64,000 bases of DNA from Macrostomum lignano (GCA_002269645.1 NIVC01001672.1:181428-245427); one strand, 5' to 3'. Shown: positions 16,220 to 64,000, counted from the first letter of the stretch. Numbers and translations: made by a program. The notes: a model not told the origin generated them from the sequence alone.

Positions 16220-16488
<269 letters not shown>

Positions 16489-39200: not shown

Positions 39201-42200
39201 TTAGTTTATTAACATTTTTTTAGTATTGGTTTTGTCAGCCTAACTGGGAGTGGGGCCATCCAAAGTGAGAATCCTGCCTACGCTGACTGCGAAGGGCCTG
39301 GCTGTGTGCAGCCTTAGTCTATGGGCCATAGACTATAAAGGACAAGCAAAGTGATAAAAAGCCATCCAATGTGAGAATCGATTGGTCTTTTAAAACTTTG
39401 CTTCTCCTTTATGGTCTATGGCCCATAGACTAAAGCTGCACGCAGCCAGGCCCTTCGCAGTCAGCGTAGGCAGGAATCTCACATTTGATGGTTTTTTATC
39501 ACTTTGCTTGTCCTTTATAGTCTATGGCCCATAGACTAAGGCTGCACGCAGCCGGGCCCTTCGCGGTCAGCGTAGGCGGGATTCTCACTTTGGGTGGCTT
39601 TATTCTGAGTTGGGCTGACAAAACCAATACTTAATAATTCATTTCGGGACCCACCTATGTGAGGTCGTTGTCAATACATGCAGTTTGCAAAATCTGTTTT
39701 TTGTGTTATCCGGATGCCAAGATTTCATGTTAGCTGCCGCCCCCCCCCCCTAAAGAAATCTTACCTGTGGCGTTAAATTATTAATTACCTAGGATGCTTC
39801 CTGGAATTTCTAGTTTCTAGAATTGTTTTAGGCTAACCTGGAATGCCACATAGCAGCATGGTCCTGCCCAAGAGATTTGAAGTATATCCAAGATTGCAGA
39901 GAACCTACTTATTCATAATTCATCAACTATCCAATGGAATGGCTGCACCTGTATCGAAATCCTAAGAATCCCAATAATTAAGTTCATGTCATGACACTAA
40001 ACTTCTGCTTTGACTGTGATTTACTCATATTTATATCGTTAAAAAATTGCTTTACAGTTCGGCTCGGTTATTTTAAATGTTTTCATTACAGTAAGCTCTA
40101 TATTGAACTATGCATATAATCTACCAGTTTGTGTTTATCTGGCACTCAGCCGGGCTGAGTCTGATCTACTAGCGCGTTTAATTAAATAATTGCCTGCTTT
40201 ATATCAAATGCCGTGCAATCTCAATGATCAATTGTTGGTCGGCTTGCTCTAGTTCAATTTTAATTATTGATTGATTTTTCAAGTTAAGATTGAAATTACT
40301 TCACTGTAAATAACAAAAGCAATCGTATCTTTGTCTGCTGCAAGGCCTACTTAAGTAGAAGGATGGGGAACTACGTTTATAGTGAAAACCTCTGTAAGGT
40401 ATTTTTACAATAGAACCTGCCTCCTGAGTTTCCAAGAAATGAAGTTTTCCCGTCCTACTTAAATAGTCCTTGGTTTTGGTCTGGTTTTGGTTTTTTTAGA
40501 AATCTCTAAGCCCCGATCCCAATTCCTAAGAACGCTGGGAACCTCTAATTTCTAGCAGTGAGTCAGCATTGAACTAGAGATATGAGACGGATATATATGC
40601 ATTTGATTTCCAGTTCTTTCTGGCCCAACACTAAGCCCGGGTCGCAAGGTCAAGAGCAACACTTTATTATCTGTGGGCCATCGTGGGTGGAAGGGAACGG
40701 GTCAAAGCCACAAAGTGTTTATGTTTGCCTATTCTAGCTGGGGCAGTTTACATTGGATGCCTGATTGCGCAACAGTTAAGAGAAATTCAACGGAAGGTCA
40801 CGAGGTCTGGGGCTTATCTTCCCAACTGCTTAGATCTCTACAGATTTCATTCAGAGGCCTATAGTTTCCCACGGTAGCTTTTCTCTTTCCCTGTCTCTCT
40901 GACTTCCAAGTGTCTTCATTCACTAAACCGGTTCTTGTTTGCTTTCCATAATTTGCTCTTCTATAATCCGCGCCTGACTTAATTGCGTCATAGCGCTTTA
41001 GAGGTTTATTATATAATATTTGCAACAGTCTCAGGCAACTGCGCCAAAGATGGGGTCCCGATAAAGGGTGCAAGTTTCCCATCGCCTTCGGTGTTTGTTT
41101 AACTTGCTTGATGAATAAATGCATACAAGTTATTTTATAGGCGGCCATGAAAGGTTGCAGCGCAAATGTAACCAGATGCTATTTCCAATCGGCTACAACT
41201 GCAATTTGTTCTCGAGTCCAATATTTGGGTCTTTTTTATTCTTGCCTGCTATTTGCCAAGACTGTTAGTTTACTCCCCATCCCAGTTTCAGGATATTTGC
41301 TGGCTTCAACTTTATGACTTAGCATATCAGATTGCCAGTAGCATTCATTCATATTTGCTGCGCTTAACTATATAAATTAACCGATGATGCAGTTGATTTT
41401 ATTACATAAAAATATTATATTCTTTTCTTTCTACTGTACAGTAGTCTAACTCGAATGTATATTCGTATTTGTTTTATTCCCAGCCTAACCGAAGAGGCCC
41501 GCAGCCAGCTGCACGGCTGGGGCTCCGTTGTGTCTATCGAGGCCAGCCCGACCACCGGCAAGCAGATCGCCATCGGCTTCAGCTCCGGCACAGTGGCCGT
41601 GCTGAATAGCTCCGATTGCAGCCTGCACAGTGTGGCTCCCGGCGCCGCCGAGCTGCGCTGCCTGAGCTGGCAAACCGACGCCAGCGCCATCTACACCGGC
41701 CACTCGGACGGTAGCTACGCCGTTTGGCGGGCCGACGAGCCAGCCGAGGCTAGTCGCCTATTGAAAACTGCCGACAACCCGCAGACTGTCTATGGCCCGT
41801 TCCCCTGCCTGCCAGTCACGCACCTGGTGCACCGCACCGCTAAACTAGGCAGCATCACCGTGCTAGCCGGCGGCATGGCTAAGAACACTCACGCCGATCG
41901 GCACACCGTCACTCTGCTTCGCGAGCAAGAGCACGTCTGCTTGGACCTGTGCTCGCCAGTTGTCGACTTGGCGCTGCTGTGCTCGCCAGGCGATGGCAAT
42001 ACTGGCCAGGCTGGCTATGACGAGCCACACACTTTGCTAGTGCTGTGCGAGTCCCAGCTGGTGGCCTTGGACCTGTACGGTGCCCAGTGGCCGGAGTTCC
42101 GGCTGCCTTATCTTTCGGCAGTTAGTGCCACTGGTGCCCCAATCACGGCCGCTCGAATCTACGGCGCCGAGACTGCCGGCACAGAGCAGATCCGGGCCGC

Positions 42201-45200
42201 TTTGTTGGCCGCCGCTTCTGATAGCAGCAGCTCCGGCTATTCAACTCGCGCTTGGCCAATCAACGGCGGCAAAACGCTGGTGCGCCCAGCCGCCGAGGAG
42301 TCGGAGAAGCCACCAGCCACTGAGCCGGCTGCCGCTAATCAGGAGGCCACCACGTCTGCTGGCGGCGACAGCGAAGCGAAGCAGGCCATCTGGGACCTGC
42401 TGGTCACCGGGCACGGCGACGGCTCCGTAGCCTTCTGGCAGATTGGCCAAACCGGCTCCGGCACCTCGGCCGCTCTGCTGTACACTCTCAACACTGCCGA
42501 CGTGTTCTCCGACGCCCCGGCTGCCGAAGCTGCCGAGCCGACCGACGTCGGTGGATTTCCGCCATTCCGCGCTGTTGGACAACGCTGGCGACGCTCGGAG
42601 ATGGTAGACGATCGGTTCGCTGTGACTGTCATAGACCTGGCCAGCGATTGCCTGCTTGTTGGCGGCGCCGCTGGTCAGGCTACGCTGTGGCGCCTTGCCG
42701 CTGCCGGTGCCGCCGCCGCCCCGGTGGAAGTTGACGTGCGCACCGTGAACGCGGACATTGTGTCGCCGGGCAAGGACAGCCCCTACGCCTGGGAGGGTCA
42801 GGCGCCGTTGCGCGTCCGCGAGGAGCCCTGGCAACCGCCTGCCGGCCGTCTGTTCGAGCCGGCCAGCATTATTTCGGCCTTCCCGCCTGACCGAATCTGC
42901 TCGCTAACGCTGGACGTTGGCCGCGGCCTGGCCGCTGTTGGCACCGGCTTCGGATTGGCGCTTATCGACACCGGCGCTAATCGCTGCTTGACAACCCACT
43001 GCACTCTGGCCGTCGCCAGCCAGACTGGCGCCGCCGCCGCTCCGCCGGCCACCCCGGCCAAGGGCAGCGGCTCGGCTGCCGCCGCTCCATCGCACAGCAG
43101 CGCCGGCTCCTCCATCACTAAGAGCCTGCGCCAGAGTTTCCGCCGGCTAAAGAAACTACGCGGCGGCAAGCGTCAGGAGTACACCGTCACCACCGAGGAG
43201 GCCGCTGAGGCCGCCGCCGCCGCCGGGCCGTCAACTTCCGCCGAGACGCAGCCGGAGGCGGCTTCCGAAGAGCCAGCAGCCGGTACCCCTGCGGAAAAAA
43301 AGAAAGAGAAAAAAGAGAAGGAAAAGAAAGAGAAAGAGAAGAAGGACAAGAAAGATAAGAAAGAGAAAAAAGAAGAGAAAGCCGAGGAAAAGAAAGAGGA
43401 AAAGCCGGAGGAGAAGAAAGAGGAGAAGGCCGAAGAGGCTAAGACTGAATCCAAGACGGCCGAAGCAGAGCCCACGGAATCGGCTACTCCAGCAGCCGAG
43501 TCAGCGCCCGAAGCCGCCGCTGCGGTCCCAGAGAAGCCGAAGCAGCAGCCGCTAACCACGGAGTTGGCCTCCGAGAGTCCTGGCCGCATCCGCTGCCTGC
43601 TGATTGCCGATGCCCACCTGGTAGCCGCCGGTGTCAGCACTCCGGCTCTGTTTGCCGGCGATCGCTCCGGTCGGGTGTACGCCTTCCAGGTGAGCGTGAC
43701 AGACACTGCCGCCGCCACTGGCGAGGCCGCTGCTGCCGCCCCATCCAAGCAGGCCAACCTAGTTAAGGAGCTGCACCTGCGCCACGGCGCTCCTGTGGTT
43801 GCTATGCACGTCACCGGGGAGCAGCAGCAGCTTCTAGTAACCTCCGAACAGCAGGTGAAACTGTTCTCCCTGCCCAGCCTTCGGCCAAGGTGCAAAGCTA
43901 GAATCCTGCCGGCCGAAGCTCCGGCCAAGCTGCGTGCCTGCGGCCTGGCCCAGTTCCGACCCGCTCCGGGCAGCAGCCAGCAGCCGCTGACCGGCCTGGC
44001 AGTTGAGGACAGCCTCGGCCGCCTCATGGTGCTGGGCCTGCCCCAGCTGAAGATCCTCGCCCAGCTTGATCGCAACGACGCCGCTTTTGGAAGCCTCGCC
44101 TATCAGCCCGCCGGCGCCGTCAATCCTCTGGCCGTGGCCGTGGCCGGCCGGTCTCGCGTCCGTCTGGTCCACCTGTCCCCGGCCGCTGACGGTCGCTACG
44201 TGGCTCCGGCCGGCCTGGACCTGCCCGATTGGGCCCGCCCGGTCAAGGCGGCGCCCGCTCAGCAGGCCAGCCCGGCCGCAGCCGCTGTTGCCGCCTCCGC
44301 TAGTCCGGCTGAATCCGCCGAGGCCGACACACCGGCCGCCGTCGGCGCCGAGCAGCAGCAGGAGCCCGAGGCCGAGGCCGCCGATCGAAGCCATCACCAG
44401 GTGGCCGCCGACATCACCATGGACGACATTAAGGAGTACGCAGCCGCCGCGTAAGTGTTAAGGCTAACTACTCGTGTGTGCGTTTTTTGTTAATCGCCCT
44501 ATAATCTTTAAAGAATCGACTCAAGAATAGCTCACTAATAATCCTGTCGAAAATCGCCTATTAATCCCCTTAATTATCGCCTTCTGATCCTCTCAAGAAG
44601 CGCATATTAATCTCCTAAAAGTGGCTATTAATCCTCAACTAAATAGGCTACTCCGCACATTTTCATGCAAGCTACTTCAGTTCAGTAGTAGTAGTTAAAT
44701 TGAAGCATTTTAATGTATTTTTATAAAGACAAACCTCATTTATTGGCTCTTACCCCCCAAATCTACCCCAGAGTGGCCCAATAGCCCATTCTACAATTGT
44801 ACATTAATCCTGTAAGAGTCGCTTATTTACGAGTATTCACCGAAAAGATCCGGCAGCGTGTAGATCCGCTTATTCACTAATATGCGCTTAAATATCAAGG
44901 TGCTAACCCAACTCGCCCTGCTCCGTTGCAGTCCCCTGCCACCAACCGAGACAATCCCGGAGACCACAGACGAGAAATCCGAGCCAGCCGCTGTTACTGT
45001 TGAAGCCGCCGCGGAGGAGGCACAGCAGGAGCAGGAGGAGAAGCCAGCCCCAGCTGCCGTCGAGGTGGTTGTCGAGCCGGCCGCCAAAGAGGACGCCAAG
45101 ATTGAGGAGGCCCCTGCGGTGTCCCCTGCCGAGATCAAAGCGGCCATTGTCAACGATGGGCAGGAGGCTCCGGACGCCTCTGCCGCCGCTGGTGAGTTAA

Positions 45201-47004: not shown

Positions 47005-48415
47005 CCCCGTGACCCCAGTTCACATACATGTAGTGAATCAGGCCCAATGACCCCTGTTTACATACATGTAGTGAATCAGGCCCAATGACCCCAGTTCACT
47101 TACATGTAGTGAATCAGGCCCAATGACCCCTGTTCACATATATGTAGTGAATCAGGCCCAATGACTCCAGTTCACTTACATGTAGTGAATCATAGCCCAA
47201 TGACTCCAGTTCACATACATGTAGTGAACCATAGCCCAATGACTCCAGTTCACATACATGTAGTGAACCATAGCCCAATGACCCCTGTTAACATACATGT
47301 AGTGAATCAGGCCCAATGACTCCAGTTCACTTACATGTAGTGAATCATAGCCCAATGACTCCAGTTCACATACATGTAGTGAACCATAGCCCAATGACCC
47401 CTGTTCACATACATGTAGTGAACCATAGCCCAATGACCCCTGTTAACATACATGTAGTGAATCAGGCCTAATGACTCCAGTTCACTTACATGTAGTGAAC
47501 CATAGCCCAATGACCATTGTTCACATACATGTAGTGAACCATAGCCCAATGACCCCTGTTAACATACATGTAGTGAACCATAGCCCAATGACCCCTGTTA
47601 ACATACATGTAGTGAATCAGGCCTAATGACTCCAGTTCACTTACATGTAGTGAACCATAGCCCAATGACTCCAGTTCACATACATGTAGTGAACCATAGC
47701 CCAATGACCCCTGTTAACATACATGTAGTGAACCATAGCCCAATGACCCCTGTTAACATACATGTAGTGAATCAGGCCCAATGACTCCAGTTCACTTACA
47801 TGTAGTGAATCATAGCCCAATGACTCCAGTTCACATACGTGTAGTGAACCATAGCCCAATGACTCCAGTTCACATACATGTAGTGAACCATAGCCCAATG
47901 ACCCCTGTTAACATACATGTAGTGAATCAGGCCTAATGACTCCAGTTCACTTACGTGTAGTGAATCATAGCCCAATGACTCCAGTTCACATACATGTAGT
48001 GAACAATTAGCCCAATGACCCCTGTTCACATACATGTAGTGAACAATTAGCCTAATGACCCCTGTTCACATACATGTAGTGAATCAGGCCCAATGACTCC
48101 AGTTCACATACATGTAGTGAACAATTAGCCCAATGACCCCTGTTCACATACATGTAGTGAATCAGGCCCAATGACCCCTGTTCACATACATGTAGTGAAT
48201 CAGGCCCAATGACTCCAGTTCACATACATGTAGTGAACAATTAGCCCAATGACCCCTGTTCACATACATGTAGTGAATCAGGCCCAATGACCCCTGTTCA
48301 CATACATGTAGTGAATCAGGCCCAATGACTCCAATTCACTTACGTGTAGTGAATCATAGCCCAATGACTCCAGTTCAATTACATAGTGAACCATAGCCTA
48401 GTGACCCCAGTTCAC
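47005..48415. repeat. Tandem array of 38/39-bp units (CCAATGACCCCTGTTCACATACATGTAGTGAATCAGGC and variants) with 155-bp higher-order period
   Basis: 38-bp period at 47041 to 47079; - strand stops recur at 47176, 47331, 47486, 47641 and 47796 (every 155 bp = 38 + 3x39). Confidence 0.95.
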
Positions 48416-48916: not shown

Positions 48917-50167
48917 CAGGGGCGTCGCCATGGATTTTACCGTAGGGGGGGGGGACAAAGTCAAGAATTCTACATAACATGAATAAATTATTATATGTAC
49001 AATATATTTCGTGACCGGTGTCATCACTCATTTTGTCGCTGCAGACACTCATTTTAGCGCTGCAGACACTCATTTTGTCGCTGCAGACACTCATTTTGGC
49101 GCTGCAGACACTCATTTTGGCGCTGCAGACACTCATTTTGTCGCTGCAGACACTCATTTTGGCGCTGCAGACACTCATTTTGTCGCTGCAGACACTCATT
49201 TTGTCGCTGCAGACACTCATTTTGTCGCTGCAGACACTCATTTTGTCGCTGCAGACACTCATTTTGTCGCTGCAGACACTCATTTTGGCGCTGCAGACAC
49301 TCATTTTGTCGCTGCAGACACTCATTTTGTCGCTGCAGACACTCATTTTGGCGCTGCAGACACTCATTTTAGCGCTGCAGACACTCATTTTGTCGCTGCA
49401 GACACTCATTTTGTCGCTGCAGACACTCATTTTGGCGCTGCAGACACTCATTTTAGCGCTGCAGACACTCATTTTGGCGCTGCAGACACTCATTTTGTCG
49501 CTGCAGACACTCATTTTGTCGCTGCAGACACTCATTTTGTCGCTGCAGACACTCATTTTGTCGCTGCAGACACTCATTTTGGCGCTGCAGACACTCATTT
49601 TGTCGCTGCAGACACTCATTTTGTCGCTGCAGACACTCATTTTGTCGCTGCAGACACTCATTTTGTCGCTGCAGACACTCATTTTGTCGCTGCAGACACT
49701 CATTTTGTCGCTGCAGACACTCATTTTGTCGCTGCAGACACTCATTTTGTCGCTGCAGACACTCATTTTGGCGCTGCAGACACTCATTTTGTCGCTGCAG
49801 ACACTCATTTTGTCGCTGCAGACACTCATTTTGGCGCTGCAGACACTCATTTTAGCGCTGCAGACACTCATTTTGTCGCTGCAGACACTCATTTTGGCGC
49901 TGCAGACACTCATTTTGGCGCTGCAGACACTCATTTTGTCGCTGCAGACACAATTTTGGCGCTGCAGACACAATTTTGCCGCTGCAGACACTCATTTTAG
50001 CGCTGCAGACACAATTTTGGCGCCTAAGGCATTTTGACATCCTGAAGCAAAATTTCTGATTTTCACAACGGGTCAGTCACAAGGTGGGGTGGGTCAAGCA
50101 TGGCGTCCCCCATAGCTTTTACTGGGGGGGGGCATTCCCCCCTGTCCCCCCGGTGGCGACGCCCCTG
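48917..50167. mobile_element. Non-autonomous hAT-like element containing a 21-bp tandem array
   Basis: Perfect 14-bp TIR CAGGGGCGTCGCCA / TGGCGACGCCCCTG; 8-bp flanks CATATGGG (48909-48916) and TATATGGG (50168-50175); subterminal G/C runs. Confidence 0.85.
49030..50020. repeat. 21-bp tandem array (GCTGCAGACACTCATTTTGTC), about 47 copies
   Basis: Directly visible; variants GTC/GGC/AGC. Confidence 0.97.
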
Positions 50168-51398: not shown

Positions 51399-54300
51399 AT
51401 GAGGCTGGGCGGCATCGCTGTGAGTCAAAGGGGATCTCATTGGATTTGCCCCATACTTCATGCTCCCTTCATTTCCCATCAACCCGAACCACATGGCTAC
51501 TTCTCTTTGAGTTCGAGCACAGAGGACGACACAGAGACACTTCTAGATGCGGCCTCTAGCTTTGAAATTGTAGCCAACTTGTACCCTAACACCTGCAGCC
51601 TAAGTCCAATACCTAACAGTACCGCCTGCTGAGTGAATTCAGTATCATTTAGAGTGGCTTAGTCGGTGGCATTATCTGGGAGGAGATTGCTTAATTAACC
51701 TATCATTTATTAATGCATTGGGTATATAGTGGCGCGAGCCTCAGAAAAATTCAAAATTCAGATACATGGGGCTGCCAACCTCAGAGATATGGGGGCGCCA
51801 ACCTCTCAGAGATATGGGAGCGCCAACCTCAGAGATATGGGAGCGCCAACCTCAGAGATATGGGGGCGCCAACCTCTCAGAGATATGGGAGCGCCAACCT
51901 CAGAGATATGGGGGTGCCAACCTCAGAGATATGGGGAGCGCCAACCTCAAAGATATGGGGGTGCCAACCTCAGAGATATGGGGAGCGCCAACCTCAGAGA
52001 TATGGGGGTGCCAACCTCAGAGATATGGGGAGCGCCAACCTCAGAGATATGGGGGTGCCAACCTCAGAGATATGGGGAGCGCCAACCTCAAAGATATGGG
52101 GGTGCCAACCTCAGAGATATGGGAGCGCCAACCTCAGAGATATGGCAGCGCCAACCTCAGAGATATGGCAGCGCCAACCTCAGAGATATGGGAGCGCCAA
52201 CCTCAGAGATATGGCAGCGCCAACCTCAGAGATATGGGAGCGCCAACCTCAGAGATATGGCAGCGCCAACCTCAGAGATATGGGAGCGCCAACCTCAGAG
52301 ATATGGCAGCGCCAACCTCAGAGATATGGGAGCGCCAACCTCAGAGATATGGCAGCGCCAACCTCAGAGATATGGGAGCGCCAACCTCAGAGATATGGGA
52401 GTGCCAACCTCAGAGATATGGGGAGCGCCAACCTAGATATATGGGAGCGCCAACCTCAGAGATATGGGAGCGCCAGCCTCAGAGATATGGGAGCGCCAAC
52501 CTCAGAGATATGGGGGCGCCAACCTCAGAGATATGGGGGCGCCAACCTCAGTGATATGGGAGCGCCAACCTCAGAGATATGGCAGCGCCAACCTCAGAGA
52601 TATGGCAGCGCCAACCTCAGTGATATGGGAGCGCCAACCTCAGAGACATGGCAGCGCCAACCTCAGAGATATGGGGGTGCCAACCTCAGTGATATGGGGG
52701 TGCCAACCTCAGAGATATGGGAGTGCCAACCTCAGAGATATGGGAGCGCCAACCTCAGAGATATCTGAGCACCAGCCCCAGAGATATGGGCGCGCTAACC
52801 TCAGAGATATGTGAGCACCAGCCCCAGAGATATGGGCGCGCTAACCTCAGAGATATGGGGGTGCCAACCTCAGAGATATGGGGGCGCCAACCTCAGAGAT
52901 ATGGGGAGCGCCAACCTCAGAGATATGGCAGCGCCAACCTCAGAGATATGTGAGCACCAGCCTCAGAGATATGGGAGCGCCAACCTCAGAGATATGGGGA
53001 GCGCCAACCTCAGAGATATGGGGGTGCCAACCTCAGAGATATGGGAGTGCCAACCTCAGAGATATGGGAGTGCCAACCTCAGAGATATGGCAGCGCCAAC
53101 CTCAGTGATATGGGAGCGCCAACCTCAGAGATATGGGGGCGCCAACCTCAGTGATATGGGGGTGCCAACCTCAGAGATATGGGGGTGCCAACCTCAGAGA
53201 TATGGGAGCGCCAACCTAGATATATGGGAGCGCCAACCTCAGAGATATGTGAGCACCAACCTCAGAGATATGGGAACGCCAAGCTCAGAGATATGGGGAG
53301 CGCCAACCTCAGAGATATGGGCGCGCCAACCTCAGTGATATGGGAGTGCCAACCTCAGAGATATGGGAGCGCCAACCTCAGTGATATGGGAGCGCCAAAC
53401 TCAGAGATATGGTGAGCGCCAACCTCAGAGATATGGGGGTGCCAACTTCAGAGATATGTGAGCACCAGCCTCAGAGATATGGCAGCGCCAACCTCAGAGA
53501 TATGGGGGCGCCAACCCCAGAGATATGGGGAGTGCCAACCTAGATATATGGGAGCGCCAACCTCAGAGATATGGGGAGCGCCAACCTCAGAGATATGGGG
53601 GTGCCAACCTCAGAGATATGGGGAGCGCCAACCTCAGAGATATGGGGGTGCCAACCTCAGAGATATGTGAGCACCAGCCTCAGAGATATGGGAGCGCCAA
53701 CCTCAGAGATATGGGAGCGCCAACCTCAGAGATATGGGGGTGCCAACCTCAGAGATATGGGAGTGCCAACCTCAGAGATATGGGAGCGCCAACCTCAGAG
53801 ATATGGCAGCGCCAACCTCAGTGATATGGGAGCGCCAACCTCAGAGATATGGGGAGTGCCAACCTCAGTGAAATGGGAGCGCCAACCTTAGAGATATGGG
53901 TAGTGCCAACCTCAGAGATATGGGAGCGCCAACCTTAGAGATATGGCAGCGCCAACCTCAGTGATATGGGAGCGCCAACCTCAAAGATATGGGGAGTGCC
54001 AACCTCAGAGATATGGGAGCGCCAACCTCAGTGATATGGGAGCGCCAACCTCAGAGATATGGGGGCGCCAACCTCAGAGATATGGGGGTGCCAACCTCAG
54101 AGATATGGGAGCGCCAACCTCAGAGATATGGGGGTGCCAACCTCAGAGATATGGGGAGCGCCAACCTAGATATATGGCAGCGCCAACCTCAGAGATATGG
54201 GAGCGCCAACCTCAGAGATATGGGAGCGCCAACCTCAGTGATATGGGGGTGCCAACCTCAGAGATATGGGGGTGCCAACCTCAGAGATATGGGAGCGCCA

Positions 54301-57300
54301 ACCTCAGAGATATGGGAGCGCCAACCTCAGAGATATGGGAGCGCCAGCCTCAGAGATATGGGAGCGCCAACCTCAGAGATATGGGAGCGCCAACCTCAGA
54401 GATATGGGGGTGCCAACCTCAGAGATATGGGGGTGCCAACCTCAGAGATATGGGGAGCGCCAACCTAGATATATGGGAGCGCTAACCTCAGAGATATGGG
54501 AGCGCCAGCCTCAGAGATATGGGAGCGCCAACCTCAGAGATATGGGGGTGCCAACCTCAGAGATATGGGGAGCGCCAACCTAGATATATGGCAGCGCCAA
54601 CCTCAGAGATATGGGGGTGCCAACCTCAGAGATATGGGAGCGCCAACCTCAGAGATATGGGGGTGCCAACCTCAGAGATATGGGAGTGCCAACCTCAGAG
54701 ATATGGGGGTGCCAACCTCAGAGATATGGGGAGCGCCAACCTCAGAGATATGGGGGTGCCAACCTCAGAGATATGGGGGTGCCAACCTCAGAGATATGGG
54801 AGCGCCAACCTCAGAGATATGGGAGCGCCAGCCTCAGTGATATGGGGGTGCCAACCTCAGAGATATGGGAGCGCCAACCTCAGAGATATGGGGGTGCCAA
54901 CCTCAGAGATATGGGGAGCGCCAACCTAGATATATGGGAGCGCCAACCTCAGAGATATGGGAGCGCCAACCTCAGAGATATGGGAGCGCCAACCTCAGAG
55001 ATATGGGAGCGCCAACCTAGATATATGGGAGCGCCAACCTCAGAGATATTGGGAGCCAGCTAGGAATCAAACTCAAGGACTCAAAGCTCAAAGCTGTTGT
55101 CTCGGTCACTCCCTCAGCCGCTGTATGCGACGGCAGTCCTCCTCCTGATAGTGGCGTTGGCGCCCACCGCGACGGCCAAGCGCGAGACGAAGACCTACAC
55201 AGTCAACACCGGTGACGGGCCGGTCACGGTGACAGAGACTCACGTGTCCGAGACCTCTTCGTCCTCGTCTTCACCGTCCGAATACAGCAGCAGCTCGGAG
55301 GTGGTTGAAACCAGCGGCTGGAGGTAAGATCGGCCTATTAATTCTAGAAGGACGTTTTAATGTCAAATGCGAATTTCGCAAATAAAGTGCAAATTTCGTT
55401 GGAAGCCGGTTCCTGTTTAGTCTGGTTTTTCTCTACCGAATATGTCTATGGTCAAACCCCATTCAGCGCCTTTAAAATGCAACGGTATTTTCAGCGTTAC
55501 TATTTTTTATTGCCTTAATGGGCAGATGCCCGGCGCATCTCTGAAGGCTGCGTACGGCTGTTCAGTCCAAGGACTGGGGGGTCGCCACACAGCCTCAATT
55601 ACCCCAGCTAATGCTGGCACCCATTTTACAGCTGGGTGAACTGAAGCAATGCAGGGTTAAGTGTCTTGCTTGAGGACACAAATTGTTCTCAGTGGGTTGA
55701 GAATCGAACTCCTGACCTTTCAGTCGTGACAGTAATTTTAATTTTTCCTTAATAATTTTCCCGCCATAGTTTTTTCTCAAATTTTTCTCGGATACAAAAT
55801 AGTGCATCAAACTAATACGACAGAAAAGCTTGCTCGAGTTTTAATTCGATAGTCCAGAAGGAGAAACATTGGGAGTTCAGTGCTAAAAAACTGAAACTCC
55901 CCATCTTGCCAATGCATATTTTGTAGCGAACTCTGCCCTATTTGACATTGTAGCGTCCTTCTACTTGAGTTTTCTCTCTTTAAAAAACCCATCGATCATT
56001 GCCCCCCCCCCCCCAGCTCGAGCGCCAAGGAGCTGCTGAAGGATTCGAAGGTCAGCGACATGTCCGCTGGGGACCTAAGCGGCAGTCTGGTGCTGGCAAT
56101 CGACAAAAACGCCATCTCCAAAGGTCTGAAAAAGTACATCATGGACGCTTTGAAGAAGCTACCGGTGAAGACCAAGAAGATTAAAATTGGCTTCGTGGAG
56201 TACACGGATCGTCCTTATACGATTGTGTCGCTGAAGCAGGTGAGGACGGCTGAGATCCCGGCACCTGACCCTGACATCCACCCTGAACCTGGAACCTGAC
56301 CGACACCCACCCTGAACCTGGCACCTGACCCTGACAACCATTCTGAACCCGGTACCTGACCTTGACAACCATTCTGAACCCGGTACCTGACCCTGACACC
56401 CTGTCCTGAACCCGGTACCTGACCCTGACACCCTGTCCTGAACCCGGTACCTGACCCTGACACCCTGTCCTGAACCCGGTACCTGACCTTGACAACCATT
56501 CTGAACCCGGTACCTGACCCTGACACCCTGTCCTGAACCCGGTACCTGACCCTGACAACCATTCTGAACCCGGTACTTGACGCTGACACCCTACCCTAAA
56601 CCCGGTACCTGACCCTGACAACCATTCTGAACCCGGTACCTGACCGAAACCCATTCTGAACCCGGTACCTGACCTTGACAACCATTCTGAACCCGGTACC
56701 TGACCTTGACAACCATTCTGAACCCGGTACCTGACATTGACAACCATTCTGAACCCGGTACCTGACCTTGACAACCATTCTGAATCCGGTACCTGACCTT
56801 GACAACCATTCTGAACCCGGTACCTGACATTGACAACCATTCTGAACCCGGTACCTGACCTTGACAACCATTCTGAATCCGGTACCTGACCTTGACAACC
56901 ATTCTGAACCCGGTACCTGACCGACACCCATTCTGAACCCGGTACCTGACCTTGACACCCTACTCCAAACCTGGTAGCTGACCCTGACATCCTACTCCGA
57001 ACCCGGTACTGGACCCAAAAACTTACATGAACTCTAACACACAGAAACCAATTAATCAGCATCAAATTCATGAATAGTGAGGTTTATAGACAGTCTTATA
57101 AGCTGTCCAGCAGCCCGATGTACTGCATGCAGCTGTACACCGCTGGCTAAGTGAAGCTCACTGATTCAAATCGCTCTCCAGGGCTGGTCGCTTGACCGGA
57201 TCTTGGCCAGGCTCCAAATCGAGCTATCCAAGAGTCGCCACGCCAAGCGGAGCGGCAAAGTTTACGATTACGTCGGCATCCAGGCGGCCTACAACGAGTT

Positions 57301-60300
57301 GCAAAAGTTCGGCAAGTCCTCCGGACCGAGGATTGTCATGCTGCTGAGCTCCGGGCGGGACGCCAACACGGCCAAGACAGAGCAGTGGCGGCACAAACTC
57401 ATGAAAGAGTGGATTAGCCTTTCCGAGATTGTTGTGGACTCGTCTTCGTGAGTACCGGGTTCAGGGTAGGGTGTCAGGGTCAGCTACCGGGTTCGGGGTA
57501 GGGTGTCAGGGTCAGCTACCGGGTTCGGGGTAGGGTGTCAGGGTCAGCTACCGGGTTCGGAGTAGGGTGTCAGGGTCAGCTACCGGGTTCGGGGTAGGGT
57601 GTCAGGGTCAGCTACCGGGTTCGGGGTAGGGTGTCAGGGTCAGCTACCGGGTTCGGAGTAGGGTGTCAGGGTCAGCTACCGGGTTCGGGGTAGGGTGTCA
57701 GGGTCAGCTACCGGGTTCGGGGTAGGATGTCAGGGTCAGGTACCGGGTTCGGGGTAGGGTGGCAGGGTCAGCTACCGGGTTCGGGTAGGGTGGCAGGGTC
57801 AGCCACCGGGTTCGGGGTAGGGGTCAGGGTCAGCTACTGGGTTCGGGGTAGGGTGTCAGGGTCAGCTACCGGGTTTGGGGTAGGGTGTCAGGGTCAGCTA
57901 CTGGGTTCGGGGTAGGGTGGCAGGGTCAGCTACCGGGTTCGGGTAGGGTGTCAGGGTCAGCTACCGGGTTCGGGGTAGGGGTCAGGGTCAGCTACCGGGT
58001 TCGGGTAGGGTGTCAGGGTCAGCTACCGGGTTCGGAGTAGGGTGTCAGGGTCAGCTACCGGGTTCGGGGTAGGGTGTCAGGGTCAGCTACCGGGTTCGGG
58101 GTAGGGTGTCAGGGTCAGCTACCGGGTTCGGGGTAGGGTGTCAGGGTCAGCTACCGGGTTCGGGGTAGGGTGTCAGGGTCAGCTACCGGGTTCGGGGTAG
58201 GGTGGCAGGGTCAGCTACCGGGTTCGGATTTTCGCTGTGTTCGAGCAAACATGAAATGAAACGTTTCCCTGAATTTTGTTTCTACAAACGGTAATTTTTA
58301 AACTGGTAGTGATCGATGACGTCAAGTTATTCAACTATTCCTTCAGACAGAATGTAGATTTTTTCTGCACTAAAATTTCTGAGTATTTCCTATTTACCAA
58401 AATCGATTTTTTCTCGGCCCATCGGAAATCAAAGGGATGATGTAAAATTTTATTCAAAATTCCGAATTTAAAATTCCAATTCCAACCTTATGCGCATGAG
58501 GGGGGCTGTGGGCACCGCAGTCAAGGTCAATTCTAAAGGGTGCCTGCTATCACGCTAAGCACACGCTCTCAAAGGCTGCACACAAGGACTGCTTAAGCAC
58601 AATTCCAATTCCCCTATCCGAGATCCAGATTACTGTGGCCGCACATGAAACCTTTTTAGGGGCATCTTCAACGTGAAAGAAGGCGGCAAGGAGACATCCA
58701 CGGACAAAACCTTGGAGCACACGACATTCCTGACTACCCTGCTTAAGTCGTACAGTAAGGATATAAGCATTTATTTGCTGTTCAATAATGCCTACATGTG
58801 CTGTCAGCAAATAAAAATCCAATATTGATCTCTTTAGGCCACTCAACTATCCAGTACTACAAGAAGATCTATGGCGAAGCGTGGGAGTTCTACATAGTCC
58901 TCAAGCACTACAAGACTCTTTACCCCGGCAGCTGGCAGACGCATTTGAAGACCTGGTTTACCAATAAATATGGCGACTCTACCAAGTTCGAGACCTACTT
59001 GCACCGGACCGAGAGCAAGACTGGCTCCCCGGTTTCTCCGGAAGACAGAATGCGAGCTACTTTCAAGAAGAAGTTCGGCTCAGCTTGGGAGAAGCACTTC
59101 CTAATTTGGAAGTACAAGAAGCTCTACGGTTTGAAGTGGAAAATCCACTACGAGCAGCATTTGATGAAGAAGAAGTACGGCAAGGACTGGTTCTCGGAAT
59201 GGGAGAAGTTGCGATTTAAGAAGAAATACGGGAAGAAGTGGGAGCCCCACTATGTGAAGTGGTATTTCAGGAAATACCGAGGGGCCACCTGGATTTACAG
59301 CTGGAAGAAGTGGCAGTTTAGACAAAAGCACAAAGAGGGCAGCAAGGCGTACGTTGACGAGTTCATGAGGTGGTACTTCAAGTACACTAAAAAGGGTGAC
59401 AAAGCGCTTGAGGCGTGGAAATCCGCTACCAAAGACCTGTCTGAGGACGAAGGCGAGAAGAAGTTCCGCTGGTTTTACTACAATTTAGTATTCCAGAAAA
59501 AGCAGGCACTGATCAAATACACCAAGTGGTTCTACAGGAAGCGGTTCGGCAAAAAGTTCCTACCAAAGTACAAGTTGTGGCTGAACAGGTTTAATACAAA
59601 CAAGCACTGGATGAAATATTACAAACTGATGGAAACGCAACTAGCCTACACTACTACCAGTTCTGTGACTGTTCATGTACACAGCATTCGCTGGTTTAAA
59701 AAGAAGTTCGGTTCGAAGTGGAGAACGCACTACGAGAAATATCAAATGAAGAAAAAATACGGCAAAAACTGGTTCTCCGAGTGGGAGAAGTTGCCATTCA
59801 AGAAAAAGTACGGCAAGAAATGGGAGCCGCACTATGTAAAGTGGTATTTTAAAAAATACCGACCTACGACTTGGATTTACAGCTGGATGAAATGGAAGAT
59901 CAAGCAAAAGCATAAGGAAGGAAGCCAGGCCTATGTTAATGAGTTTATGCGATGGTACTTCCGGTACAAAAAGGCAGGAAGCAGTGCTTTATCAGAGTGG
60001 AAAGCTTTAAACAAGGATCTGTCGGCTGACAAGAAGGAAATGATGTTCCGCTGGTTTTACTATAACCTAGTCTTCAAAAAGAAGAAAGCTCTGATAAAGT
60101 ACACGAAATGGCACTACAGAAAAATATACGGAAAAACGTTTCTAACGAAGTTCAAGGAATGGGAAAAGAAAATCAACTCTGGTAAAGCCTGGATTCCGTT
60201 ATACCAAAAAACTAACCATCAACTCCAATACCAGGTCGAGTGCGGGAGGGGAAACCACATGTTAAAACTGCAACCTGGTACAAGAGACACTACGGTCACA

Positions 60301-63300
60301 AGTGGCGCTGGTACTACACCCGAGTGGTCTACCGTCGACGCTACGGTCGCAAGTGGCGCGTGCACTTTAGGAAGTGGCTGAAGCGAGTGTGGAAGAAGCC
60401 GTCACCGAAGCGTCGCGTCCTGCACAAGGTCACCTGGTACAAGAGACACTACGGTCGCAAGTGGCGCTGGTACTACACCCGAGTGGTCTACCGTCGACGC
60501 TACGGTCGCAAGTGGCGCGTGCACTTTAGGAAGTGGCTGAAGCGAGTGTGGAAGAAGCCGTCACCGAAGCGTCGCGTCCTGCACAAGGTCACCTGGTACA
60601 AGAGACACTACGGTCGCAAGTGGCGCTGGTACTACACCCGAGTGGTCTACCGTCGACGCTACGGTCGCAAGTGGCGCGTGCACTTTAGGAAGTGGCTGAA
60701 GCGAGTGTGGAAGAAGCCGTCACCGAAGCGTCGCGTCCTGCACAAGGTCACCTGGTACAAGAGACACTACGGTCGCAAGTGGCGCTGGTACTACACCCGA
60801 GTGGTCTACCGTCGACGCTACGGTCGCAAGTGGCGCGTGCACTTTAGGAAGTGGCTGAAGCGAGTGTGGAAGAAGCCGTCACCGAAGCGTCGCGTCCTGC
60901 ACAAGGTCACCTGGTACAAGAGACACTACGGTCGCAAGTGGCGCTGGTACTACACCCGAGTGGTCTACCGTCGACGCTACGGTCGCAAGTGGCGCGTGCA
61001 CTTTAGGAAGTGGCTGAAGCGAGTGTGGAAGAAGCCGTCACCGAAGCGTCGCGTCCTGCACAAGGTCACCTGGTACAAGAGACACTACGGTCGCAAGTGG
61101 CGCTGGTACTACACCCGAGTGGTCTACCGTCGACGCTACGGTCGCAAGTGGCGCGTGCACTTTAGGAAGTGGCTGAAGCGAGTGTGGAAGAAGCCGTCAC
61201 CGAAGCGTCGCGTCCTGCACAAGGTCACCTGGTACAAGAGACACTACGGTCGCAAGTGGCGCTGGTACTACACCCGAGTGGTCTACCGTCGACGCTACGG
61301 TCGCAAGTGGCGCGTGCACTTTAGGAAGTGGCTGAAGCGAGTGTGGAAGAAGCCGTCACCGAAGCGTCGCGTCCTGCACAAGGTCACCTGGTACAAGAGA
61401 CACTACGGTCGCAAGTGGCGCTGGTACTACACCCGAGTGGTCTACCGTCGACGCTACGGTCGCAAGTGGCGCGTGCACTTTAGGAAGTGGCTGAAGCGAG
61501 TGTGGAAGAAGCCGTCACCGAAGCGTCGCGTCCTGCACAAGGTCACCTGGTACAAGAGACACTACGGTCGCAAGTGGCGCTGGTACTACACCCGAGTGGT
61601 CTACCGTCGACGCTACGGTCGCAAGTGGCGCGTGCACTTTAGGAAGTGGCTGAAGCGAGTGTGGAAGAAGCCGTCACCGAAGCGTCGCGTCCTGCACAAG
61701 GTCACCTGGTACAAGAGACACTACGGTCGCAAGTGGCGCTGGTACTACACCCGAGTGGTCTACCGTCGACGCTACGGTCGCAAGTGGCGCGTGCACTTTA
61801 GGAAGTGGCTGAAGCGAGTGTGGAAGAAGCCGTCACCGAAGCGTCGCGTCCTGCACAAGGTCACCTGGTACAAGAGACACTACGGTCGCAAGTGGCGCTG
61901 GTACTACACCCGAGTGGTCTACCGTCGACGCTACGGTCGCAAGTGGCGCGTGCACTTTAGGAAGTGGCTGAAGCGAGTGTGGAAGAAGCCGTCACCGAAG
62001 CGTCGCGTCCTGCACAAGGTCACCTGGTACAAGAGACACTACGGTCGCAAGTGGCGCTGGTACTACACCGAGTGGTCTACCGTCGACGCTACGGTCGCAA
62101 GTGGCGCGTGCACTTTAGGAAGTGGCTGAAGCGAGTGTGGAAGAAGCCGTCACCGAAGCGTCGCGTCCTGCACAAGGTCACCTGGTACAAGAGACACTAC
62201 GGTCGCAAGTGGCGCTGGTACTACACCCGAGTGGTCTACCGTCGACGCTACGGTCGCAAGTGGCGCGTGCACTTTAGGAAGTGGCTGAAGCGAGTGTGGA
62301 AGAAGCCGTCACCGAAGCGTCGCGTCCTGCACAAGGTCACCTGGTACAAGAGACACTACGGTCGCAAGTGGCGCTGGTACTACACCCGAGTGGTCTACCG
62401 TCGACGCTACGGTCGCAAGTGGCGCGTGCACTTTAGGAAGTGGCTGAAGAGAGTGTGGAAGAAGCCGTCACCGAAGCGTCGCGTCCTGCACAAGGTCACC
62501 TGGTACAAGAGACACTACGGTCGCAAGTGGCGCTGGTACTACACCGAGTGGTCTACCATCGACGCTACGGTCGCAAGTGGCGCGTGCACTTTAGGAAGTG
62601 GCTGAAGCGAGTGTGGAAGAAGCCGTCACCGAAGCGTCGCGTCCTGCACAAGGTCACCTGGTACAAGAGACACTACGGTCGCAAGTGGCGCTGGTACTAC
62701 ACCGAGTGGTCTACCGTCGACGCTACGGTCGCAAGTGGCGCGTGCACTTTAGGAAGTGGCTGAAGCGAGTGTGGAAGAAGCCGTCACCGAAGCGTCGCGT
62801 CCTGCACAAGGTCACCTGGTACAAGAGACACTACGGTCGCAAGTGGCGCTGGTACTACACCCGAGTGGTCTACCGTCGACGCTACGGTCGCAAGTGGCGC
62901 GTGCACTTTAGGAAGTGGCTGAAGCGAGTGTGGAAGAAGCCGTCACCGAAGCGTCGCGTCCTGCACAAGGTCACCTGGTACAAGAGACACTACGGTCGCA
63001 AGTGGCGCTGGTACTACACCCGAGTGGTCTACCGTCGACGCTACGGTCGCAAGTGGCGCGTGCACTTTAGGAAGTGGCTGAAGCGAGTGTGGAAGAAGCC
63101 GTCACCGAAGCGTCGCGTCCTGCACAAGGTCACCTGGTACAAGAGACACTACGGTCGCAAGTGGCGCTGGTACTACACCCGAGTGGTCTACCGTCGACGC
63201 TACGGTCGCAAGTGGCGCGTGCACTTTAGGAAGTGGCTGAAGCGAGTGTGGAAGAAGCCGTCACCGAAGCGTCGCGTCCTGCACAAGGTCACCTGGTACA

Positions 63301-64000
63301 AGAGACACTACGGTCGCAAGTGGCGCTGGTACTACACCCGAGTGGTCTACCGTCGACGCTACGGTCGCAAGTGGCGCGTGCACTTTAGGAAGTGGCTGAA
63401 GAGAGTGTGGAAGAAGCCGTCACCGAAGCGTCGCGTCCTGCACAAGGTCACCTGGTACAAGAGACACTACGGTCGCAAGTGGCGCTGGTACTACACCCGA
63501 GTGGTCTACCGTCGACGCTACGGTCGCAAGTGGCGCGTGCACTTTAGGAAGTGGCTGAAGAGAGTGTGGAAGAAGCCGTCACCGAAGCGTCGCGTCCTGC
63601 ACAAGGTCACCTGGTACAAGAGACACTACGGTCGCAAGTGGCGCTGGTACTACACCCGAGTGGTCTACCGTCGACGCTACGGTCGCAAGTGGCGCGTGCA
63701 CTTTAGGAAGTGGCTGAAGCGAGTGTGGAAGAAGCCGTCACCGAAGCGTCGCGTCCTGCACAAGGTCACCTGGTACAAGAGACACTACGGTCGCAAGTGG
63801 CGCTGGTACTACACCGAGTGGTCTACCGTCGACGCTACGGTCGCAAGTGGCGCGTGCACTTTAGGAAGTGGCTGAAGAGAGTGTGGAAGAAGCCGTCACC
63901 GAAGCGTCGCGTCCTGCACAAGGTCACCTGGTACAAGAGACACTACGGTCGCAAGTGGCGCTGGTACTACACCCGAGTGGTCTACCGTCGACGCTACGGT
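51399..64000 (+). CDS. Uncharacterised giant secreted protein: signal peptide, Ser/Thr-rich linker, degenerate VWA domain, two ~194-aa Lys/aromatic repeats and at least 23 53-aa Arg/Lys/Trp/Tyr repeats (runs off the window)
   Basis: Phase-consistent exons 51399-51419, 55118-55323, 56017-56239, 57182-57447, 58660-58754 and 58838 to beyond 64000. N-terminus MRLGGIAPLYATAVLLLIVALAPTATA-KRE. VWA-like strands SLVLAID, IKIGFVEYTD and PRIVMLLSSG. Single-base frameshifts at 60240, ~62068, ~62544, ~62702 and ~63814 must be corrected to read through. Confidence 0.8.
51765..55050. repeat. ~3.3-kb tandem array, ~23-bp unit GCCAACCTCAGAGATATGGGAGC with 21-25 bp variants, filling most of intron 1
   Basis: Period 23 (51821 to 51844); lies between donor 51420 and acceptor 55117. 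Confidence 0.97.
55516..55729 (-). mobile_element. tRNA-derived SINE, copy 2 (5'-shortened)
   Basis: Near-identical to 19252-19478 (CTGAAGGCTGCGTACGGCTGTTCAGT...GAGAATCGAAC...CTTTCAGTCGTGA). Confidence 0.75.
56255..57010. repeat. 31/32-bp minisatellite (GAACCCGGTACCTGACCYTGACAMCC...CT), C-rich on +
   Basis: Periods of 31-32 bp measured; fills intron 3 of the secreted-protein gene. Confidence 0.95.
57452..58227. repeat. 32-bp minisatellite (CAGCTACCGGGTTCGGGGTAGGGTGTCAGGGT), reverse-complement relative of the 56255-57010 array
   Basis: Its reverse complement ACCCTGACACCCTACCCCGAACCCGGTAGCTG matches ACCCTGACACCCTGTCCTGAACCCGGTACCTG of the upstream array. Confidence 0.95.
60281..64000 (+). repeat. 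Coding tandem array, 159-bp unit (53 aa), about 23 near-identical copies
   Basis: Period 159 (60363, 60522, 60681); the unit encodes HKVTWYKRHYGRKWRWYYTRVVYRRRYGRKWRVHFRKWLKRVWKKPSPKRRVL. Confidence 0.97.

Follow-up and report, generated by a model that had tools for sequence, protein, structure and literature searches.

The window, a stretch of 64,000 nt, was assigned by identical sequence to contig NIVC01001672.1 of the Macrostomum lignano assembly Mlig_3_7. On its + strand a gene begins with an ATG at 51399 and comprises seven exons, with canonical GT..AG signals at each border and consistent phases; the last of them holds a long tandem array of 159-bp units. Exons 1 to 6 are an exact match to the NCBI model BOX15_Mlig034012g1 ("hypothetical protein, partial", 709 aa; P0003), which ends at 60153, 28 nt short of the exon 6 donor. 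The NCBI annotation of M. lignano is RNA-seq-guided (PMC5730564), and the structure of exons 1 to 6 has transcript support. BOX15_Mlig034012g1 is a real gene that has been annotated only in part. A second locus (L002), 98% identical and collinear, has the same architecture as this gene, with just ~37 copies of the 23-bp minisatellite in intron 1. The features of the gene within the window are the following:

51399..51419, + strand: exon 1, start and first 7 codons (MRLGGIA), donor GTGAGT; start of P0003
51758..55058, no strand: minisatellite in intron 1, 23-bp unit, ~143 copies, non-coding
55118..55323, + strand: exon 2, rest of the putative signal peptide (PLYATAVLLLIVALAPTATA, then KRE), Thr/Val-rich stretch, acidic Ser-rich segment; matches P0003
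56017..56239, + strand: exon 3, N-terminal part of the degenerate VWA domain
57182..57447, + strand: exon 4, central VWA part
58660..58754, + strand: exon 5, C-terminal end of the head region
58838..60181, + strand: exon 6, 447 aa, K/W/Y/F-rich; annotated to 60153 in P0003
60182..60234, + strand: putative intron 6, 53 nt (GTAAAG...ACTAAC...CCAG), beyond the deposited transcript model
60235..64000, + strand: exon 7, continuing past the window (continuation seen in L001); 13-aa linker, then repeat array
60273..64000, + strand: tandem array, 159 bp (53 aa) per unit, 23.5 copies in the window, 15 of them identical

An earlier interpretation made from the window's sequence alone (the sequence-only reading) had described six phase-consistent exons for a secreted-type N-terminus, a Ser-rich segment, a degenerate VWA head and a giant cation-aromatic repeat of a family that it did not recognise, about 2000 aa within the window and still open at its end. 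Borders and phases from the ATG at 51399 onwards agree with phase-consistent exons, and the architecture holds. Seven exons were found instead of six, with the 53-nt intron (60182-60234) dividing the 1,344-nt exon 6 from the repeat exon. The length is 1,973 codons in total, and the stretch of more than 1700 aa said to be dominated by Lys, Arg and aromatic residues corresponds to ~1,705 K/R/aromatic-rich residues in the window. Thus the observation largely stands, with the exon count and the open end corrected, and the reading built on it is borne out for the architecture and the unrecognised family, but not for the open end (see below). Rfam and tRNA scans of the window gave no matches. A neighbour of the gene is an LLGL-like ORF.

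Putative signal peptide and VWA-like head

To judge from its N-terminal sequence, the protein would be secreted through a cleavable signal peptide. The signal-peptide-like N-terminus, MRLGGIAPLYATAVLLLIVALAPTATA with KRE after the putative cleavage point, is followed by the Ser-rich stretch SETSSSSSSPSEYSSSSE. Pfam scans were run on the spliced gene model from the window. They matched the head weakly to VWA (PF00092; 22.0 bits, E=2e-4), below the gathering score of 23.8. Sequence matches in the PDB (phmmer) were to the VWA domain of collagen VI alpha-3 (E=3e-6) and to vWF A1 (E ~0.06-0.1). The degenerate VWA domain of the sequence-only reading is consistent with both the sub-threshold Pfam match and the collagen VI alpha-3 match. 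Alignment with VWA profiles and chains extends across strand beta-1, helix alpha-1 and strands beta-2 to beta-4, and a sibling model (P0004) carries the automatic UniProt name "VWFA domain-containing protein".

The MIDAS metal site (DxSxS ... T ... D) is absent from the head. Strand beta-1, encoded in exon 3, reads LVLAIDKNAIS, so that DxSxS is not conserved (LAIDKNAIS), and exon 4 has IVMLLSSGRD at the place of the TDG conserved in VWA domains (MLLSSGRD). The head would accordingly resemble a VWA domain lacking the metal-binding MIDAS, as in vWF A1. In a single-sequence AlphaFold model of P0003 it has no confident fold (pLDDT mostly <50), and Foldseek against the PDB with this low-confidence model returned only noise, with nothing at E<0.5. 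The CARD domain in the automatic UniProt name of another model, P0001, was rejected as unsupported by the Pfam scan, which covered the spliced model and gave no CARD family up to E=1.

The repeat tail and its coding nature

Exon 6 contains 21% K and 24% W+Y+F, no Cys, and has a net charge of +78. It includes two diverged copies of ~167 aa, each built from repeats of a 17-residue motif, Phi-K-K-K-[YF]-G-x-x-W-x-x-H-[YF]-x-x-[WL]-x. The two copies differ by pN 0.17 and pS 0.94, i.e. they have been under strong purifying selection, probably as a long helical domain. AlphaFold predicts exon 6 as all-helical, with pLDDT 70-90 across aa 270-400; known helical repeat families (TPR, Sel1, HEAT and others) gave no Pfam match to exon 6 or to the units at E up to 1.

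The array of exon 7 continues in the contig to window-equivalent position 67428, giving ~45 copies. Past this point, broken copies of diverged units extend as far as window-equivalent 67644, where an N gap begins. The array is limited at its 3' side by this N gap at one locus and by the contig end at the other, and the C-terminus would lie beyond both. Residue counts for the 53-aa unit are exactly those of the sequence-only reading: 13 R, 9 K, 6 W, 6 Y, 3 H and 1 F, no D, E or C, and a net charge of +22 (41.5% K+R, 24.5% aromatic, zero acidic residues). Each unit has a Pro-Ser-Pro break and regularly spaced KR/RR sites. For the tail, Tyr amounts to 10-11% and Lys to 17-21%, again with no Cys. 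Given the 17-residue period, the aromatic residues come to lie along a single side of the helix, and the hydrophobic moment reaches up to 0.73. In AlphaFold predictions helices occur along the whole tail, at low confidence in the array (pLDDT ~55, pTM 0.18); this suggests a tail of amphipathic helices, not a coacervating chain that is disordered throughout.

The array is coding. It is open in one of six frames, and as this frame has no ATG and is preceded by a stop at 60213, within the 53-nt intron, it can be translated only if spliced to exon 6. This intron is bounded by GT and AG, with ACTAAC as its branch site. Its removal puts the array in frame with exon 6; if it is retained, the frame shifts and a stop follows at 60381. 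Compared with the consensus, diverged units have pN/pS values of 0.28/0.73 and 0.18/0.78 in the coding frame, while dN/dS is 2.9 and 0.70 in the two shifted frames. C111A, the variant met most often among the units, leaves the amino acid unchanged (CGA to AGA), and in a composition-adjusted BLASTP comparison the units show homology to exon 6 (E=3e-7). Exon 6 would thus be spliced to exon 7 and into the array, a join supported indirectly by its splice signals, by the array frame having no ATG, and by dN/dS and homology.

Read literally, the assembled CDS ends at a TGA at 62127-62129 after 1,349 aa, so the protein is not open at the window's end as had been claimed. The cause is a one-base deletion in unit 12, one of four such deletions in the window:

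62068..62069, + strand: CCC to CC deletion in unit 12 (starts 62022, 158 bp); frameshift, stop at 62127-62129
62544..62545, + strand: CCC to CC deletion, one C missing in the unit starting at 62498 (158 bp)
62702..62703, + strand: CCC to CC deletion, one C missing in the unit starting at 62656 (158 bp)
63814..63815, + strand: CCC to CC deletion, one C missing in the unit starting at 63768 (158 bp)

All four fall in the unit's only G/C homopolymer of at least 3 bases, on at least three unit haplotypes. Indels of the array concentrate near the contig end and the assembly gap. A diverged block of 324 nt is intact at L002 21651, and it is broken at differing sites at L001 25071 and L002 21011. The assembly was made with Canu from PacBio CLR reads and polished with short reads (PMC5730564); inside 7 kb of identical units such reads cannot be assigned a position. 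From this pattern, the frameshifts of the array are probably PacBio/Pilon assembly errors. Corrected for them, the array would have ~45 units, and the protein, of at least 3,100 aa, would carry a net charge of ~+1,000.

Two other accounts of the array have to be weighed against this giant protein. A non-coding minisatellite could be open by chance in one frame, with the gene ending by read-through of the "intron" at 60381 (~784 aa). About 15% of the M. lignano genome is tandem repeat (PMC5730564), the window alone holds at least ten minisatellites, with non-coding ones of periods 16, 21, 23, 29, 31, 32, 44 and 155, and the array lies past the end of the deposited transcript model. What sets the 159-bp array apart from these non-coding repeats is a period divisible by 3, a single open frame out of six, frame-specific selection and homology at the protein level to the transcript-supported exon 6. 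With its commonest variant being synonymous and a canonical splice joining it exactly in frame to exon 6, a non-coding array is scarcely credible. More has to be said about a truncated protein followed by a dead array. The unit 12 deletion could be real, as the same deletion is present in the corresponding unit (index 11) of the second locus, and variants of units 0 and 13 are also common to both loci. The 1,349-aa ORF obtained from the literal assembly would then be the entire protein, comprising 11.9 units and the C-terminal tail EWSTVDATVASGACTLGSG, and the downstream units would be 3' UTR or decaying repeat. However, the chance of a coincident deletion is ~0.2, given 5 and 2 such deletions among ~42 units, and the deletion recurs on different unit haplotypes, only in the homopolymer, while other indels of the array are clearly assembly noise. 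Moreover, the downstream units, old diverged ones included, keep a coding-type conservation, so that we regard truncation as unlikely.

Relatives and possible function

BOX15_Mlig034012g1 is a lineage-restricted orphan gene, of which public annotation comprises just the first 709 codons. When exon 6 alone was used as query against 1.84 billion representative proteins, one marginal match (166 aa, E=3.8e-4) was obtained outside M. lignano, which we take to be spurious. The 53-aa unit is present in no protein among 5.8 billion, and otherwise the database searches returned nothing but models of the gene itself, in line with the earlier failure to recognise the family. In the literature, the gene ID is absent from searchable full texts and from the searchable supplements of PMC7336406, PMC12896417, PMC5730564 and PMC5816591. 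Neither the gene ID nor any of five tryptic peptides from the head and exon 6 occurs in four supplementary files of PMC6410801 (Wunderer et al. 2019), which include footprint and tail mass-spectrometry tables and were searched as text. The sequence-only reading had allowed for an already characterised protein; in the literature searched the gene is not characterised, its 5' 709 codons being deposited as a hypothetical protein. The array protein is missing from public protein sets because short-read transcripts and the assembly both break at the repeats. Since the deposited model is truncated and the array damaged by homopolymer indels, annotation pipelines will keep missing it.

The explanation we favour for the whole, at a probability of about 0.5, is an orphan gene for a secreted, Cys-free protein with the corrected giant array, acting as a polyanion-binding and self-associating secretion. 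The product would consist of the signal peptide, a short acidic Ser/Thr-rich segment, the VWA-like head and a hierarchical repeat tail. In this tail a 17-residue motif (Phi-KKK-[YF]-G-xx-W-xx-H-[YF]-xx-W) would recur, at first in two old diverged blocks of ~167 aa and after them in at least 45 near-identical 53-aa units. Each 17-mer is proposed to form an amphipathic helix, with aromatic residues at positions 1, 5, 9, 12/13 and 16 on one face and Lys/Arg on the rest. For the cationic faces, the proposed partners are polyanions, among them acidic or sulfated glycans, mucus, the glycocalyx and surfaces coated with biofilm. The aromatic faces might self-associate through pi-pi and cation-pi contacts, so that the secreted chain would condense to a cohesive, sticky phase, while the VWA-like head could dock it onto a partner protein. 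The roles put forward in the sequence-only reading (glue, structural material or antimicrobial) would likewise be candidates suggested by composition.

The closest analogy is Mlig-ap1 of the same species, whose K/R repeats bind negatively charged sugars and give cohesion, attachment being blocked by heparin (PMC6410801). The two have in common a giant size, secretion (predicted for the present protein), extremely basic tandem repeats of Lys/Arg, and transcript and gene models that were fragmented. By this analogy, our best guess is that the secretion, polycationic and made of amphipathic helices, would bind polyanions and associate with itself. Like duo-gland adhesive proteins of the Mlig-ap1/ap2 type, the present protein would be large and secreted, with highly charged tandem repeats: it has a putative signal peptide, 41.5% K+R and 53-aa units numbering at least 45. 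Unlike it, Mlig-ap1 has repeats (e.g. SRKPRRKNRKSRKP) without aromatics, as against 24% W/Y/F here, and contains Cys-rich C-type lectin, vWD/C8/TIL and EGF domains instead of a Cys-free, VWA-like (type A) head. Identity with Mlig-ap1 or Mlig-ap2 was ruled out, as repeat sequences and domain sets differ: none of the Mlig-ap1/ap2 domains (vWD, C8, TIL, EGF, TSP1, lectin) appeared in the Pfam scan, and the published repeat peptides are absent. The database searches likewise showed no sequence relationship to Mlig-ap1. Proteins such as collagen VI alpha-3 and vWF A1, to whose VWA domains the head aligns, are extracellular, with the domain serving protein-protein docking; our head differs from theirs in scoring below the Pfam threshold, in its replaced MIDAS (DKNAIS, SSG) and in the lack of Cys, and no known VWA protein has a tail like this one.

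Mussel foot proteins and the Pc proteins of sandcastle worms are likewise secreted, repetitive, Lys/Tyr-rich and strongly basic, which makes a cation-pi or coacervation chemistry plausible from composition, as it would conversion of Tyr to DOPA, and the short acidic poly-Ser stretch recalls phosphoserine cement components. There is no sequence homology to these proteins, and the present one is rich in Arg/Trp and predicted to be helical, not disordered. Adhesion in M. lignano is temporary and has been published as not DOPA-dependent.

Two other types of secretion should be considered. Tandem antimicrobial polyproteins exist in other animals, and convertases cutting at dibasic sites (PKRR/V, LKR/V, YRRR/Y) could release dozens of Arg/Trp-rich antimicrobial or cytolytic peptides into mucus or rhabdite-type secretions. 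The R/K and W/Y composition, the high helical hydrophobic moment and amphipathic potential resemble those of Arg/Trp-rich antimicrobial peptides, and at least 45 identical tandem units with their regular KR/RR sites and one Pro-Ser-Pro break each stand behind a signal peptide. Acidic spacers or propeptides, usual in such precursors, are not found between the units to neutralise the cargo, and KR, RR and RRR occur throughout, so that no discrete processing site stands out. The tail totals thousands of residues, a VWA head is atypical of peptide precursors, and the older, diverged repeats of exon 6 are conserved as a whole, under strong purifying selection as a putative long helical domain; we therefore hold a polyprotein to be quite unlikely. 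The Tyr/Lys tail could otherwise be a substrate of phenoloxidase or tyrosinase and harden by DOPA/quinone-Lys cross-links into eggshell, egg cement or another sclerotised secretion, comparable to the vitelline eggshell proteins of trematodes. Flatworm eggshell precursors are Tyr/Lys/Gly-rich DOPA proteins. The Tyr and Lys contents given above would suit such tanning, in the Cys-free tail covalent cross-links would need Tyr or Lys, and a secretory signal before a long homogeneous repeat is typical of structural materials. Yet the searches of representative proteins revealed no similarity to known eggshell proteins, Gly is low, and the Arg and Trp contents are unlike those of eggshell proteins, which leaves a tanned precursor very unlikely.

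Temporary bioadhesion is studied genetically above all in M. lignano, and the favoured polyanion-binding secretion would be a second polycation, missed so far, that is unrelated to the known polycationic glue repeat protein of this species and far more aromatic. It may belong, unnoticed until now, to an adhesive, mucous, egg or defensive secretion. More tentatively, and with considerable doubt, the tail might found a new class of protein material: a Cys-free polymer of 17-residue amphipathic helices (KKK-Y-G-xx-W-xx-H-Y-xx-W) with a net charge of ~+1,000, condensing through like-charge cation-pi/pi-pi contacts or with polyanions, and serving as an unrecognised glue, granule matrix or defensive secretion apart from Mlig-ap1 and Mlig-ap2. 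With 41% Arg/Lys, 25% Trp/Tyr/Phe, no acidic residues and no Cys, the array is a natural test case for condensation driven by cation-pi contacts, and its 17- or 53-residue unit provides a compact design for biomimetic materials.

Gene model, deposited versions and gene copies

Window positions 41399-64000 match NIVC01001672.1 (Mlig_3_7, GCA_002269645.1) at every one of the 22,602 positions compared. For the repeat gene, BOX15_Mlig034012g1, we arrived at a spliced model of seven exons on the + strand, where the sequence-only reading had counted six. All borders are canonical (GT..AG) and phases are consistent; introns 1-6 measure 3698, 693, 942, 1212, 83 and 53 nt.

Exons of the repeat gene (spliced model, window coordinates)
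51399-51419, +, exon 1
55118-55323, +, exon 2
56017-56239, +, exon 3
57182-57447, +, exon 4
58660-58754, +, exon 5
58838-60181, +, exon 6
60235 to past 64000, +, exon 7

Residues 1-709 of the model are identical to the NCBI entry "hypothetical protein BOX15_Mlig034012g1, partial" (P0003), whose CDS (window 51399-60153) ends 28 nt short of the exon-6 donor. Since the Mlig_3_7 annotation was guided by RNA-seq (PMC5730564), exons 1-6 are transcript-supported. The older ML2 assembly contributed two UniProt models of this gene, mis-spliced or frameshifted: A0A1I8FLB2, which carries the automatic name "CARD domain-containing", and A0A1I8HZJ0 ("VWFA domain-containing"). The gene is already deposited, but only as a partial hypothetical protein, its repeat being unannotated and without homologues. 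A collinear locus on NIVC01002000.1 (L002) is 98.4% identical, and a second copy fits the duplication known in the M. lignano DV1 line (PMC5730564).

Several introns carry repeats of their own. A 23-bp minisatellite in intron 1 (window 51758-55058) has about 143 copies, compared with only about 37 in L002 (10360-11188); for gene copies of 98% identity this is a large length polymorphism. Intron 2 contains a SINE-like segment (55540-55720; ...GGTTAAGTGTCTTGCTTGAGGACACAA...GAATCGAACTCCTGACC...) of tRNA-derived appearance, for which neither ARAGORN nor Rfam made a call. Introns 3 and 4 harbour inverted arrays of mutually reverse-complementary 31/32-bp units (56257-57016 and 57453-58227; about 760 bp, 80-89% complementary) on either side of the 266-nt exon 4. 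These could pair in the pre-mRNA and loop out exon 4, giving skipping, which would shift the frame, or a circular RNA.

Protein head and the 17-residue motif

Residues 1-27 read by eye as a putative cleavable signal peptide (MRLGGIAPLYATAVLLLIVALAPTATA, followed by KRE). Next come a short Thr/Val-rich stretch, predicted with low confidence as a beta-hairpin by single-sequence AlphaFold, and an acidic Ser-rich segment (SETSSSSSSPSEYSSSSEVVE). Residues ~95-265 give a weak but reproducible VWA match: Pfam PF00092 scores 22.0 bits (cut-off 23.8), and sequence matches in the PDB are the VWA repeats of collagen VI alpha-3 (E=3e-6) and vWF A1. The MIDAS motif is not conserved in this VWA-like region (it reads DKNAIS; LLSSG).

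The exon 6 product (447 aa; 21% K, 24% W+Y+F, net charge +78) lacks Cys and contains two copies of about 167 aa with 69% protein identity and saturated synonymous sites (pN 0.17, pS 0.94). The duplication is old, and purifying selection on it has been strong. Within the copies a 17-residue motif, Phi-K-K-K-[YF]-G-x-x-W-x-x-H-[YF]-x-x-[WL]-x, recurs in register. Between these repeats (window 58838-60181) 94% of synonymous sites differ, compared with 75% expected at saturation, and the GC3 values of the two copies are 0.75 and 0.61. Codon usage seems to have diverged in a directional way, with protein identity remaining at 69%.

If the motif is drawn as a helix, its positions 1, 5, 9, 12/13 and 16 share an arc of about 120 degrees, which lines up the aromatic residues on one side and leaves Lys/Arg to form the opposite surface (hydrophobic moment up to 0.73). 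The single-sequence AlphaFold runs, which are weak evidence, gave a mean pLDDT of 53.5 for P0003, with the head not resolved and the exon 6 region all helical (pLDDT 70-90 over residues 270-400); Foldseek against the PDB returned nothing with E below 0.5. A model of six array units was likewise helical with breaks at Pro-Ser-Pro, at low confidence (pLDDT 55.6, pTM 0.18).

Among 1.84 billion representative proteins, phmmer with exon 6 as query retrieved only the M. lignano model and a single marginal match, a protein of 166 aa that we take as spurious (E=3.8e-4, ~35 residues aligned). With the "CARD domain-containing" model as query, a word-seeded search over 5.8 billion proteins found only three models, all of this gene; a protein search with consensus and diverged array units gave zero matches, and Pfam detected no family in the tail. 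By these searches the tail sequence forms an orphan family of its own, and public protein sets lack the array.

Coding status and length of the array

The 53-aa unit, TWYKRHYGRKWRWYYTRVVYRRRYGRKWRVHFRKWLKRVWKKPSPKRRVLHKV, consists of two 17-residue motifs and an 18-residue Pro-containing linker. Its composition had been given exactly in the sequence-only reading (13 R, 9 K, 6 W, 6 Y, 3 H, 1 F, no D/E/C, net +22). Whether the array is coding matters because about 15% of the M. lignano genome is tandem repeat (PMC5730564); non-coding minisatellites are numerous in the window, and three lie within introns of this gene. The open frame has no ATG, and a stop within the 53-nt intron (60213) closes it upstream, so that it is translatable only if spliced to exon 6. 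Excision of this intron (GTAAAG...ACTAAC...CCAG) brings the array exactly into phase, and splice signals and phase together predict such a splice. The period is 159 = 3 x 53, with only one of six frames open. Diverged units close to the distal end differ from the consensus mostly synonymously (pN/pS 0.28/0.73 and 0.18/0.78), as against dN/dS of 2.9 and 0.70 in the two shifted frames; the commonest unit variant, C111A, is synonymous, and the units are homologous to exon 6 (BLASTP E=3e-7, composition-adjusted). Period and open frame, splice phase, pN/pS, synonymous variant and exon 6 homology argue for a coding array, and a non-coding satellite finds little support.

Identical units account for 15 of the 23.5 in the window. 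Four units (starts 62022, 62498, 62656 and 63768) measure 158 bp because one C of the CCC run is missing from each, and the assembled CDS consequently stops at 62127-62129 after 1,349 aa. The earlier observation of a giant repeat protein is real, although its frame, described as still open at the window end, is broken as assembled. On NIVC01001672.1 the array extends to window-equivalent 67428 (~45 units), followed by broken copies of diverged units up to an N gap starting at window-equivalent 67644; in L002 it reaches the contig end. We read the indels as probable assembly noise, because they recur in the unit's only G/C homopolymer on different unit haplotypes, concentrate beside gap and contig end, and leave a 324-nt diverged block intact in one place but interrupt it in two further places, at differing sites. 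A fourth reason is that Canu built Mlig_3_7 from PacBio CLR reads, with short-read polishing (PMC5730564), and short reads are impossible to place within 7 kb of identical units. A protein genuinely ending at 1,349 aa is nevertheless kept as a rival, since the deletion in unit 12, the first frameshifted unit, is present at the corresponding unit in both loci, a coincidence with a chance of about 0.2. Once the indels are corrected, the sequence before the gap encodes no fewer than 3,116 aa (net charge about +1,000).

A diverged two-unit block (GWFKRRYGTNW... / TLRWFKKHYPKNW...) is inserted once or twice close to the distal portion of the arrays (25071-26245 in L001, the NIVC01001672.1 locus; 21011-22133 in L002). 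The array is therefore organised at a higher order, and the homogeneous 53-mer expanded out of an older core.

Proposed function and neighbouring features

The best-supported reading is that of a secreted polycation: the tail would bind polyanions, its chains would self-associate through their aromatic faces, and the VWA-like head would dock the molecule. The same polyanion-binding logic applies to the K/R repeats of the adhesion protein Mlig-ap1 of this species, where negatively charged sugars were shown experimentally to block attachment (PMC6410801). The gene is neither Mlig-ap1 nor Mlig-ap2, as repeats and domains differ. Alternatively, the Arg/Trp content may reflect an antimicrobial polyprotein, or the Tyr/Lys content a precursor that is tanned to form eggshell or cement. 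Neither the head peptides nor the gene ID occur in the searchable footprint mass-spectrometry supplements of PMC6410801, and the gene ID was not found in other searchable texts and supplements. The product is alike in kind to polycationic secreted repeat proteins, whereas no known relative shares its aromatic, predicted-helical, Cys-free tail of 17-residue motifs. The protein, a putative secreted polycation, may interest bioadhesion and biomaterials research.

Seven more tandem arrays lie at window 5348-6417, 6906-8718, 9290-10704, 13027-14135, 16222-16487, 47010-48415 and 49025-50023 (periods 16, 31, 44, 29, 2, 155/116 and 21 bp). Several yield long spurious ORFs in multiple frames, so ORF listings easily mislead in this genome. 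Other features comprise LTR-retrotransposon pol and gag ORFs (1650-4272, - strand; RVT_1, RNase H-like, integrase-like), a second RNase H ORF (14696-15739, +), an amiloride-sensitive sodium channel (ASC/DEG-ENaC) exon with a possible C-terminal acidic exon (17882-19117 and 20209-20976, +) and a ubiquitin C-terminal hydrolase (UCH) fragment (23057-23665, -). Next to the repeat gene, on its upstream side, lies an LLGL/tomosyn-like WD40 gene (NCBI product 1,276 aa) with a 999-aa open exon (41455-44454, +) carrying a long Ala/Glu/Lys-rich low-complexity insert.
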